A stretch of DNA of 64,000 bases. Source: Macrostomum hystrix (lineage: Eukaryota; Animalia; Platyhelminthes). Position numbers and translations under genes: made by a program. The notes under the pieces were generated by a model that was given only the letters and a program-made list of their open reading frames with translations, was not told where the DNA came from and ran no database searches. The stretch covers positions 7,502,001 through 7,566,000 of the forward strand of contig CATNEN010000007.1 in NCBI GenBank assembly GCA_950097015.1. The letters are read 5' to 3'. Below, piece by piece: positions 38,601-44,600 of this stretch (the first letter of the stretch is position 1; the number at the start of each line of letters is the position of its first letter).

Positions 38601-41600
38601 GTTGTAACCAGGGGGGTTAGTCTGCACAGCGGATGCTTTGCGTGCTGGGTGCTGTCCGCTTAGCCAAACCTTTTCTTTTCTCTCCTTGCACGGGCCCTCA
38701 TTTTGGTGCACTGATGCTGCTGCTGCTGCTGTTGCTTCCCTGCAGTAGTATTCGCACACAAAGCGCGCGATAGGGCCGCCACAGCAGCGTATTGGACGCA
38801 GCGACTGACAGGGTTGGGGGAGAGAAAGGTGAAAGCGGTAGGGAGCAGATCTGCAATGACAAATGTGAAATGACTTCCCAGTCCACCCGTGCCGATAGCT
38901 GCAGCTGCGCCCCATGAATATTTGAGTTCGCTGCCTCTATCGGGTAGAAAAAAGACTGCAGCCGGGGAATAGTGTGTGAGCTGCAATCCCTTTGAGCTGT
39001 GGAGACAGAGGAGGACACAGATATTTATTAATTAAGGTGATTCATCGCCGGGGGACGGCAGTTGAGAGCGGGATGCCGCCGTGTTACGCACTATTGCTCC
39101 AACTGTCTGCCCCACCCTGTCCGCTGTCTTGTTTCCAGTTCAATCTTCGCATCGAGTCCTATTTGCGTGTCCGCTTTCTCAAAACTATTTAGGCTTCTCT
39201 CTTATCTCGGCCTGAATAAGAGGCTTCTATCCCTTCCTCTTCTCCCTAGTTATCTGAAAAATTTCCCTCTTCAGCGAACGAGCAGCTGAAAGCTTGGAAG
39301 GAGAGAGAGGGGGCGAGCGAGAGAATGTAGAGATGAGGCGGCGGGATGCTGATGCTGCAGCTTCGCCCAGACTCTCATTCACCTCCCTCTCTACCGCGCA
39401 CTTTTCCCCCACCCCGCAATCTCCATCCGCCCCGCCTCCCCTTCCTTCATCTTTCGCATTCCGCGGCGCTTCTCGGCGCCATCCTCCTCCGGCCGCCCTT
39501 CACAGCCTCCTCCTGCTCCGCCTCATCTGTGCCGGTGAGACAGGCGGCTGGCTGCATGCAGCCGATGGTTAGGAGGTTAGTCTGGGATAAGCCCTCCTTT
39601 CCCTTGAGCGCCATCTTCTTTCCTGGACTGTCTTTCCTCTCTACTTTACTGGCAGACTCCTGCTCTATAGTTATTTATCTCATTTCATCTGCCTGCATTG
39701 CGTCAATAAATACAGATTGAGCCAAATCGATGCTGTGATAACAGTGCGGAGTTGTCTTTGAACAGGAATTTTGTTTTGTTTTATCAAGTTTCTGCGTTGT
39801 TGCGCGCACTTTAACAAGTGAAATCGAATTTGAAGCGAGAAGTCAGACACGAATTGAAAATAGTTCAAACCGGCAGAAAATTAGTCCGGCCAAATGCCAC
39901 AGCTGGCATTTGAATATCGTGCTTCAGTGCCAACCTTATTTTTGTTAATACAGCGTGCTTTCCCGCGCCTGAACCCTTTTTATATTAGCATTTATTCAGT
40001 GTCTGGCGTGCATCTGGCGCAACTACTCACAAACTACCGTAACAGTAGTGCGGCTCGCTTCATTGTCTATTTTATAATTAAAATATCAAAATGATAATTT
40101 GTACTTGTCCCGCAAGTATATTTTACCTTTGATCGCATCTAATTTGAAGCCGCTGTAAATGCAACTCGCTATTTGTTATTGTGATAGCAGCACATATAGC
40201 ACATTCTTCTGTTTGACCTAAATTAGCACACTAGCCTGACAAGATTAGCCTTTGTAAGCTTCATTTGAAATAACAAAATCAAAAATACCCTTAGCCGGAG
40301 AACCTGCTGCTAGCCAGCAAGACCAAAGGCGCCGTTGTTAAACTGGCCGACTTCGGCCTGGCCATCGAGCTGCAGCCAGACCAGTCGTCCGCGTGGTTTG
40401 GTGCGTGCCGCTGCCGGCTCCCCTCATCCGTTGCCTCAGATTCCAATATATATATTTATTTCCCTTTATTACATTTATTCATTTCATTATTTAATCATAT
40501 TTGTGATTCGTGGGTGTGCGGTGACACTCGTTTCTGAGTCTGGTCTAACGGTCGAGTTTGCTATGGCGAGACAAAATCATTTTTGGCTAATTTTACCATT
40601 AAGAAACCAATTTGTGACGACTCAAGCGCTTCACTAGCGACTCAAAAGCTTCTCTAGCGACTAAAAATCTTATCTAGCGACTCAAAAGCTTATCTAGCGG
40701 CTCAAAATCTTATCTAGCGACTCAACCGCTTCACTAGCAACTCAAAATCTTCTCTAGCGACTAAAAAGCTTCTCTAGCGGCTCAAAATCTTCTCTAGCGG
40801 CTCAAAATCTTCTCTAGCGACTCAAAATCTTATCTAGCGACTCAAAATCTTCTCTAGCGACTAAAAATCTTATCTAGCGACTCAACCGCTTCACTAGCAA
40901 CTCAAAAGCTTCTCTAGCGACTAAAAAGCTTCTCTAGCGACTCAAGCGCTTCACTAGCGACTCAAGGGCTTCACTAGCGACTCAAAAGCTTCTCTAGCGT
41001 TTCAAGCGCTTCACTAGCGACTCAAAAGCTTCTCTAGCTACTCAAAATCTTCTCTAGCGGCTCAAAATCTTCTCTAGCGACTCAAAATCTTCTCCAGCGA
41101 CTCAAATGCTTATCTAGCGACTCAAAAGCTTATCTAGCGACTCAAAAGCTTATCTAGCGACTCAAAAGCTTCACTAGCGACTCAAAAGCTTATCTAGCGA
41201 CTCAAAAGCTTATCTAGCTACTCAAAAGCTTCTCTAGCGACTCAAAAGCTTCTCTAGCTACTCAAAATCTTCTCTAGCGACTCAAAATCTTCTCCAGCGA
41301 CTCAAATGCTTATCTAGCGACTCAAAAGCTTATCTAGCGACTCAAAAGCTTATCTAGCGACTCAAAAGCTTATCTAGCGACTCAAAAGCTTCTCTAGCGA
41401 CTCGAACGCTCTAAAATAACCAAAAAATATATTATATAGCTTCTGAAGTGATTCCAACTTTAGACATCGAAGGTATCTACTCAACTCAAAATAGCAAAAT
41501 ATCCATTTAAGCGCGCGTGAATTAGGATTTAGAAAAGTAGCAAAATGGCACATGATCTGTAGTGTGAGCGGATTCTGTCAGTAGATTTAACTCAATTATA

Positions 41601-44600
41601 TTTATTTTACATTTCCTTCTCCGCTTTCCCTCGCTTTGTTAATCAGCTTTTCCTTATGCATTATTATAAACATAGTTTTTTAAAGAAAGGATACGGAAAA
41701 AACATTAAATTATTTAATTTCCTTCAATCAATAGTTTTTCAAGTTTGTTAATTCGCGCCTTCGGACGCGCACACACACGGTCGATATGAAATTTATTTAT
41801 AGCTTCCTTCTTTGGTGAATCATAAATTTGGCTTCTGTGGCTTCTGTTTGCTTGCTCTGTGTAACAGCTTACTATTATTCATTGTATATGGATGTATGTG
41901 GATTTTCAGTCGTTGATTTTACCTATGATTTTACTCTCTGGTATTTGTGACTACGGCTGTAGGTATGACAGGCGATTTGGCTATGTAAATTGTTTCATAG
42001 GCCAAGAAAATTAGATAATTAAATCGTATAAGAAATGAAAGGGATACTTTTTAACCCGTCGCTTAAGTTGTATGTGTCACGTGCTTTTAGTATATCAATG
42101 ATTTAAATGCATTTCTGCAAGAAACTATTACTTTATTATCCGAAATCTCGTGTACCTTCAAGTGATAATTTTTGCTTGGATTTCATGGATGAAAATGGTA
42201 GATAAAGAAAGATAAAACTACTGACATTTTTCTACAACATACGGATTGTTGCGAGGGCCGCCCACCTCTGTCTCCTGCTTGTTGATTCCTGTCTCTCTCC
42301 GCCCGACTCTCCCCCCGCTCTCTCCCATTAAATTGCCGCTCACCGTCTCCAGCCGGAGAATCTGCTGCTAGCCAGCAAGGCCAAGGGCGCCGCTGTTAAA
42401 CTGGCCGACTTCGGCCTGGCCATTGAGGTGCAGGGCGAGCAGGCGGCCTGGTATGGTACGTTCGCGGCTTGGGCGCTGGTGACCAGCCGACCTGCCAGCT
42501 GTCAAACCCGAATTAAATCCAATCTGCTGTTTATTTTAGAATTCTTATTTTGAAATCTATATATAAGCGTCAATTAAAAATCATTTGGAGTTTATCATAG
42601 AGTGGACATATAGTCTACTTATAGTAGTTTCAAATATCTAATTATAGTGATTATAATAACTGTACAGGGGGTATAGATTCCGACTTCTGACGGACCTGTC
42701 TGAGTTAATAATGATAAATAATAATAATAATAATTGCAGGAGGGCTGCGGGCAATGGCACATCATTTAGTGACACTAGACCCGCAGCCAGCGAGGAGGCA
42801 ATTCTGACAATTTCACTGACTCCTGAGCACACAGGCTCACAGATACTGTACGCAGACACACTCTCACACTGGTGTGTACATCAGCCCTGCCTTTCTCATC
42901 GTCTGGCAGTGTACACTTTCATTGGGCCTTGGAGGTTGGCCCTCGAGGGCGTAAATTGCACGACAAGCAACCAAGCCTTCTCTCCGCGGCTGCGCCCCAA
43001 ATAAATGTGGCCTCGCCGCGGAATCGAGCTTAGGGACCTTGGTGCGAGCGGCAAACGCTTTAGAACGCTCCTGTCTGAACAAATATATTTATTTAATTGC
43101 AGAATTTTAGCAATCCTCTAGCTTGAACAAGAATAAGTAGTTTAAAATGTTAAAAATGAAAAAAATGAAAATTATTTATAGTTTTTTGCAGTGATGTGCG
43201 AGCATCATGATATTTGGCACTGCTTCTATTTATTTTCGCCCCGTCCCTCATCTCCAATAGTCTTTGTTGTGCCGCATTTCTTATGCATTTTTTAGTTTAC
43301 AACTTCTTCTAATGTTCGTTTCTGAGCAGAATTAATCCCATTAGAATGGGAACTTTCATGCTGCATTGTAAAAGATTCGCCACAATTGTTCAGTGTCTCA
43401 TTCAAATAAAGCAATAAATTTCGTTTCAGCACCCAGCCAAGTACTCTTAGTAGTATCACAATTGAAATCGCTTCTGTTGTACCCGTGTGAAAATAGAATA
43501 ATTTTTTAATTAATAAAATTGCGCAACTCCAGGTCCAATCTCGTTCGTTGTGTTAGCTTGCTCTAGCTCCCGACCCACTCTGTGTTGTCAATTGTGGACG
43601 TGAGTTTCTTTTAGGGAGATTTATTGATTTCTCTTAGACCGATGGGAGTTTTATCTATGCCTAGATACATTTTTCTCTTTCTGATATCATCTGAGGCGTA
43701 GCCATTTACGAGCTATTATAACTTCTGCAACTTTTTTACTAGAAATTGCTACATGCCACGCCTGTCATACGGTCTGTCATAGCTGTGGCATGCGTGCATG
43801 CTGTGTGAATCGGTAACGCCGATGTTTAGTGTGCCAATGTTCCTAATGTGTTCAAGAGTTTAAAATTAATTTATAGAGACTTTTAAGAATCTCTACTACT
43901 TACAGTAGTTTTAATTTATTAAATTAAATGCGCGAGTATTTCTCGAGTCAAGCAAGAAGGGCTATTCTGATCTTATAAACCAATTATAGCGCAATGCACA
44001 CTGAATACCCAAGATAGAAAATATTAGTTTCCTCGTGTGCCCCAACTCTTCATTGTCGCCATGGCAACCAATATAATTAATTATACAAGCGTCTGTCCGC
44101 TTCGATCCGCAGGATTCGCCGGCACCCCTGGCTACCTGTCGCCGGAAGTGCTTAGGAAGGATCCCTACGGCAAGCCGGTGGACATCTGGGCTTGCGGTGA
44201 GGCTGCAATTGAGAATTAGCTTTTGGTACTCTTTATCTGTCTAATTTACATTTGCGCTACCTGGTCCGCAGGTGTCATTCTCTACATCCTGCTGGTTGGC
44301 TATCCACCATTCTGGGACGAGGACCAGTCCAGGCTGTATGCCCAGATCAAGGCTGGCGCCTTTGATGTGAGTTCCATAAAACATCCTTGACCTTGCCTAT
44401 TCGCCTACTACCTTCTCAACGTCGCCTGCTGACTCTCGCCTTGTACTCGTATAAGTATTCCCTGTCGCTCTCGCCAAATGATTCGCTCCTCATCCTCGCC
44501 TACTTATCAATTCCTCGCCATTGCCTAACGATCAACACCTTCAGTCGTTTCCCGTAAGTATCCCTGATCCATCTCCTCGCCCTCGCCTACTGATCCATCT

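Follow-up and report, generated by a model that had tools for sequence, protein, structure and literature searches.

The window analysed here is the whole stretch of 64,000 nucleotides (nt) from the flatworm Macrostomum hystrix, corresponding to positions 7,502,001 to 7,566,000 of contig CATNEN010000007.1 (assembly GCA_950097015.1). Through an exon-by-exon scan, a complete CaMKII gene encoding the kinase domain, the regulatory segment and the hub has been identified on the + strand, at approximately 26633-59498. The kinase motifs AAKII, HRDLK, DFG and SPE are legible in its exons, and the Pfam Pkinase profile is matched exon by exon over profile positions 9-263. The regulatory segment comprises the exon 45052-45133, with the RQET autophosphorylation site, and the exon read at 45211 onward, with the paired Thr (LTTM) of the calmodulin footprint; the two exons are joined in RNA. 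The hub is recognised by the profile PF08332 (CaMKII_AD) on four exons at 57865-59498 (profile positions 2-126 of 128, E values from 5e-4 to 5e-11). Within the kinase core, the exon that codes for the DFG motif together with the first half of the activation loop is present in two versions, 6A and 6B, which lie in tandem between the catalytic-loop (HRD) exon 5 and exon 7 (Table 1).

An AG stands directly before each of the two exons and a GT directly after it. Frame 0 is the only open frame in either exon, and the final base of each opens a new codon; 6A encodes 35 residues plus one base and 6B 34 residues plus one base. Comparison of the flanking introns indicates that they are mutually unrelated. 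The first 25 codons of the exons differ at five bases, three of them in synonymous codons, which corresponds to 93% identity over the first 75 nt, and the divergence is concentrated behind the DFG motif, where 6A is one residue longer and possesses a proline and two serines. These properties, together with the exon lengths, the common passage from phase 0 to phase 1 and the AG/GT ends, had been described in an initial annotation made from the sequence alone, and all of them were confirmed. Thus 6A and 6B display the characteristic features of a tandem exon duplication; (i) adjacent position; (ii) homology; (iii) equal phases; (iv) near-equal length; (v) splice sites of their own. When the whole genome (220 Mb, 42 contigs) was searched in six frames with the 6A peptide, the only matches were 6A itself, 6B (E 1e-9) and the exon pair of a paralogous gene on contig C11, so the likeness of the two exons is not due to chance. 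When aligned to solved CaMKII structures, the 6B peptide covers residues 138-171 without gaps (53 bits), while the 6A peptide covers the same residues with an insertion of one residue (44 bits); the first structure matches of both peptides are CaMKII alpha, beta, gamma and delta and the worm CaMKII. The start of exon 5 was placed from an AG and the exon length of 73 nt rather than from reads.

Table 1. Exons of the two tandem pairs and other features of the intervening introns (window coordinates unless contig C11 is named)
Feature	Position	Strand	Length	Remarks
Exon 5, upstream constitutive HRD catalytic-loop exon	35899..35971	+		phase-0 end; homologous to vertebrate CaMKII exon 6
Exon 6A, unusual version, main RNA form	40295..40400	+	106 nt	donor G|GTGCGT
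Intron separating 6A and 6B	40401..42352	+	1952 nt	partly covered by unspliced contigs
Exon 6B, textbook-like version, minor RNA form	42353..42455	+	103 nt	donor G|GTACGT
Exon 7, downstream constitutive exon, P+1 loop and APE	44113..44196	+		phase-1 start; takes 6A or 6B; Pkinase match
Paralogue A exon	C11 819625-819730		106 nt	between HRD and P+1-loop exons
Paralogue B exon	C11 821312-821414		103 nt	1.6 kb beyond the A exon
20-nt-period tandem array	40618-41403			within the 6A-6B intron
Dispersed repeat	42750..43062		~350 nt	intron after 6B; also at window 24484-24872 and C11:816757-817061

The use of both exons was examined in RNA data from four runs (X1-X4) of one organism and one study, which were mapped as assembled contigs to 39900-45300; contigs of this kind can document that a form is present but not that it is absent, and they reflect expression levels only roughly. 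Five consecutive GT..AG joints through constitutive exons, including 44196>44272, 44366>44835, 44957>45052 and 45133>45209, identify the four runs as complementary DNA (cDNA). The joint between 6A and exon 7 (40400>44113, GT..AG) occurs in each of the four runs, on contigs that also carry constitutive exons, and in X3 a single contig of 938 nt (record 16) holds this joint together with such exons. The unaligned letters preceding 40295 in each of the four runs are the last 32 bases of exon 5 of the window gene and not those of its paralogue, therefore the joint 35971>40295 is used as well. The joint between 6B and exon 7 (42455>44113, GT..AG) was found in one run of the four, on a 133-nt contig of X4. 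A direct joint of 6A to 6B (40400>42353) is not listed among the contigs of the four runs, in which presence rather than absence is recorded. Contigs from the RNA runs also cross the 6A/intron and intron/6B borders (records 10, 24 and 25).

The upstream side of 6B was approached through the starts of the contigs. Record 13 of X2 opens with 20 extra letters, followed by a match to 42351-42694 which takes in an AG, the whole of 6B and the beginning of the next intron. The AG at 42351 is common to the end of exon 5 and to the acceptor of the 6B intron. In a 31-mer assembly graph, the path from exon 5 to 6A must part from the path to 6B at twenty letters, as 6A and 6B share their first eight bases and differ at the ninth, and the contigs with the 5>6A junction in X2 and X4 start in the same manner. 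Based on the AG overlap and this k-mer logic, the X2 contig is best read as a 5>6B joint, and the start positions of the contigs point to the same upstream joint in both X2 and X4. In these four runs, and within the rough levels that assembled contigs give, 6A is the main form and 6B the minor one, and the two were not seen together.

The consequences for the reading frame were derived from readings of the single exons. The inclusion of both exons adds 209 nt and shifts the frame; the reading of 6B is then displaced by two bases, and a stop appears at the 15th codon of 6B. When neither exon is included, exons 7 and 8 are open in the shifted frame and the stop is reached at the ninth codon of exon 9. 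The statement of the initial annotation that both or neither would break the frame is borne out in this way, and 6B on its own preserves it. The reading frame would at least enforce exclusivity, both wrong combinations leading to an early stop, and the wrong forms would presumably be removed by nonsense-mediated decay.

A second complete CaMKII gene is located on contig C11 (812041-829558). It is about half as long as the window gene, and its introns cannot be aligned to those of the latter. The paralogue possesses a DFG exon pair like that of the window gene, with the same A-then-B order, the same lengths, identical donor motifs, the A-specific marks and an identical B peptide. The marks common to both A exons are Thr10, Leu26, Pro28, one extra residue and the final Phe; the length, frame and donor are likewise kept. 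The tails of the A exons differ, being PDQSSAWF in the window gene and PELANDWF in the paralogue. The two serines of 6A are missing from the latter, and the suggestion of the initial annotation that the swap adds a phosphorylatable loop does not hold as a conserved property. Across eleven other exon blocks, 189 of 1002 bases differ between the genes, with pooled synonymous (dS) and non-synonymous (dN) divergence of about 2 and 0.04, respectively. Because dS is about 2 and the pair occurs in both genes, the duplication of the CaMKII gene is old and the duplication of the exon is still older.

The two members of the pair have evolved differently since the gene duplication. Exon B shows 14 differences between the window gene and the paralogue, all of them silent (dN 0), and judged by this comparison 6B is under very strong purifying selection. 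For exon A the corresponding dN is 0.12; the changes cluster in the last ten codons, where dN reaches 0.34. The near-identity of the 5' parts of 6A and 6B was compared with what independent codon choice would produce. In the first 25 codons of the paralogue pair, 14 of the 23 comparable codons differ, against 14.5 expected, whereas in the window pair (40295-40369 and 42353-42427) only three codon mismatches occur against 11.75 expected (P ~1e-4). Codon bias as the source of this near-identity was therefore rejected. Gene conversion is the most likely cause of the likeness in the 5' part of the window pair, and it would end just before the diverged tail of the activation loop.

The splice joints, the frame logic and the conservation in an old paralogue support the proposal of the initial annotation that the DFG motif and activation segment of CaMKII are encoded by tandem, mutually exclusive exons. 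We consider it likely, with good confidence, that 6A and 6B are a mutually exclusive pair which arose by tandem exon duplication and is enforced by the reading frame, 6A being the default exon and 6B a rarer, conserved one. Each mRNA would contain one of the two, 6A or 6B, with the HRD exon before it and the P+1-loop exon behind it, and two kinases would result, differing only at residue 147 and residues 163-171. Several points weigh against this view. All RNA evidence comes from the assembled contigs of one study, and assembly of this kind loses rare variants and gives unreliable levels. No single contig spans exon 5, 6B and exon 7; the identity of the 20 letters before 6B in X2 as exon 5 was deduced indirectly, and the same X2 contig retains the intron downstream of 6B. 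Finally, the conservation of the pair comes from this one genome, i.e. from the window gene and its paralogue.

The rarity of the 6B joints, with 6B>exon 7 seen in one of the four runs, and the retained intron of the X2 contig would also fit a different arrangement: 6A would in effect be constitutive, and 6B, though conserved, would be non-productive or purely regulatory and would tune the output of CaMKII via unstable or incompletely processed transcripts. We regard this as unlikely. Despite the 14 silent sites, both paralogues encode one and the same 6B peptide, which argues for selection on the 6B protein and not merely on an RNA element, and this peptide matches canonical CaMKII without gaps; moreover, the joint from 6B to exon 7 in X4 is a clean GT..AG joint, and 6B alone keeps the frame.

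The reverse arrangement, with 6B as the working exon and 6A as a weak, minor or decaying duplicate, had been raised as a caveat in the initial annotation and is very improbable. It draws on the poor pyrimidine tract of 6A (47% pyrimidine in the 40 nt of the acceptor, compared to 78% for 6B) and on the fast evolution of the 6A tail. The weak, A-rich acceptor is real, but 6A is found on the main spliced contigs of all four runs, and the A exon of the paralogue, the acceptor of which is likewise A-rich, preserves frame, length and donor. An assembly or haplotype artefact, at which the 93% identity of the first 75 nt might hint and which the initial annotation had named as a possible refutation, is excluded for practical purposes by tails that differ in sequence and length, by unrelated flanking introns, by independent RNA contigs that hold both exons and cross the borders of both copies, and by the same layout in a paralogue at a dS of about 2.

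If the preferred interpretation of a mutually exclusive pair is followed, the choice between 6A and 6B would appear to be regulated. Competing docking/selector pairings of the Dscam type in the flanking introns, a check suggested in the initial annotation, were looked for, and none conserved with the paralogue was found; in the interval from the HRD exon to exon 7, the blocks common to both genes are limited to the exons and a transposon. A competition of this type was rejected, since the introns are not conserved and the inverted repeats are few, weak, AT-rich and absent from the paralogue. Because no conserved competing RNA pairing was found, control by trans-acting factors is proposed; these would probably act at the acceptors of 6A and 6B, which differ strongly.

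Two inverted-repeat pairs bracket 6B, namely 42191-42219/43647-43675 (29 nt, 72%) and 42021-42037/43275-43291 (17 nt, 82%). They could loop 6B out, but they are probably chance matches, being AT-rich and having no counterpart in the paralogue.

The positions that vary between the two versions are, in human alpha numbering obtained by alignment to 3SOA, residue 147 and residues 163-171, the latter representing the stretch from three residues past the DFG motif to the Trp-Phe ahead of the P+1 loop. Exon 6A specifies Leu163, Pro165, one extra residue and Phe171, while 6B specifies Val163, Gly165 and Tyr171. The reported contacts of the CaMKII peptide groove (K137, E139, F173, G175 and P177-Y179; PMC9336311) all fall outside this stretch, and the known groove is therefore not directly altered by the swap. 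In addition, CaMKII does not depend on phosphorylation of the activation loop (PMC9336311), which is unusual among kinases. The initial annotation had suggested that the swap may alter contacts with substrates or with the regulatory segment. For the two reasons given, it is more plausible that the swap influences the geometry of the loop, the basal activity or the contacts made inside the holoenzyme than the known substrate groove, and it is through such features that the loop swap would alter the behaviour of the kinase.

Both versions have been retained through an old gene duplication, and the non-canonical one is mainly used. The pair may be viewed as a natural experiment on the contribution of the activation loop to CaMKII regulation. 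Tentatively, and with more doubt than belief on our side, the pair might represent an old, regulated switch specific to this flatworm lineage, in which the longer, proline-containing loop is the default and the canonical loop is reserved for particular cells or stages. In that case, two genes with two loops each would give holoenzymes mixing up to four types of catalytic subunit, and the activation threshold or the spread of autophosphorylation would be tuned through the kinase core and not through the linker.

The diversity of CaMKII is usually ascribed to the variable linker. The remark of the initial annotation that CaMKII splicing normally affects this linker is correct as far as it goes, yet incomplete, as vertebrate CAMK2D also alternates its kinase HRD exon through the mutually exclusive exons 6v1/6v2, also called 6A/6B (Sloutsky et al., bioRxiv 10.1101/721589; PMC12060085). 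This is the only alternation of the CaMKII core that has been described; in mouse, the second version accounts for about 10% of CAMK2D transcripts in the olfactory bulb (PMC12060085). The CAMK2D pair resembles the window pair in belonging to the same gene family and in having one dominant and one minority version. The two differ in the exon concerned. CAMK2D alternates the 73-nt alphaE/HRD exon, whereas the window gene alternates the next one, homologous to the 103-nt DFG exon of vertebrates (exon 7), which is single in vertebrate exon lists (bioRxiv 10.1101/721589). Conversely, the HRD exon is single in both the window gene and its paralogue, unlike in CAMK2D. The DFG exon is thereby a second alternated exon of the CaMKII core, and in the library searched by full text, no paper reporting alternation of the DFG exon in CaMKII came to light. 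Among other kinases, a mutually exclusive pair inside the kinase domain is represented by exons 6a/6b of JNK (MAPK8/9/10), which keep the same fold and alter partner preference. The JNK pair belongs to another kinase family, lies in the C-lobe after the activation loop and shares no common descent with the CaMKII pair.

The distribution of the DFG exon pair was examined with a profile of the A exons in a metagenome scan, which yielded 80 CaMKII loci of unknown animals, 34 of them cDNA-like and 46 genomic-like. A second DFG exon was found at none of the 80 loci, and the 22 loci holding both flanking exons contain exactly one DFG exon each, always of canonical length. Searches of protein sets gave a similar result. 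With the 35-residue 6A peptide, phmmer gave, among the matches listed from 1.84 billion representatives, TPR-like noise and single-exon fragments of canonical length, and no A-type exon; the combination of ELQP with an extra residue occurs in 0 of 265 sequences retrieved from a set of 5.8 billion with region 1-40 of an 80-residue open frame and a profile of the two A exons. These protein-set blanks carry little weight, as the sets comprise only open frames of 44-140 residues with a start codon, the best 120 matches were listed, and the window exons are absent from them too. As far as seen, the DFG exon pair is particular to this lineage.

Two invertebrate CaMKII loci from metagenomes possess tandem 73-nt HRD exons with AG/GT ends, L023 (8712-8784 and 9477-9549) and L048 (2659-2731 and 4299-4371). 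These pairs sit upstream of a single DFG exon and, when used together, break the frame. In contrast to the window pair, they duplicate the HRD exon and are known from DNA alone. Because L023 and L048 duplicate the same exon as vertebrate CAMK2D, the CAMK2D switch may have arisen earlier, or more often, than has been described, and the pairs as a whole suggest that swapping of kinase-core exons recurs in CaMKII evolution. A different kind of loop variation is seen at loci L012, L021, L029-L031 and L060-L074, many of which come from one sample series; they represent a CaMKII paralogue of one group of animals, and its single DFG exon ends in EVQKDQESWF and not in EVQGDQQAWF. The same samples contain a second gene with the canonical loop, i.e. 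the loop varies there via duplication of the gene, not of the exon.

The introns of the window gene are rich in repeats. The very high read depth behind 6B is caused by the dispersed repeat of about 350 nt listed in Table 1, a repeat that does not belong to the switch. The genome contains at least 3970 candidate copies of it, with 91-94% identity; its depth in the RNA runs is 500-3000, and no Rfam match was obtained for it. It is probably a transcribed element similar to a short interspersed element (SINE) or a miniature inverted-repeat transposable element (MITE). The high-coverage stretch 42615-43157 was also considered as a small RNA gene, and this was rejected on account of the dispersed repeat and the missing Rfam match.

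Besides the array within the 6A-6B intron (40618-41403), minisatellite arrays are located at 33975-35644, 36558-36973, 44564-44821, 49349-50468, 51072-51923, 53418-54374, 54935-55698, 55815-57375, 60703-61406 and 62324-63777. The introns of the window CaMKII gene are packed with such long arrays, which explains why, at 33 kb, the gene has about double the length of its paralogue (17.5 kb). The two genes differ as well in the G+C content of third codon positions, which is 0.73 in the window gene and 0.56 in the paralogue.

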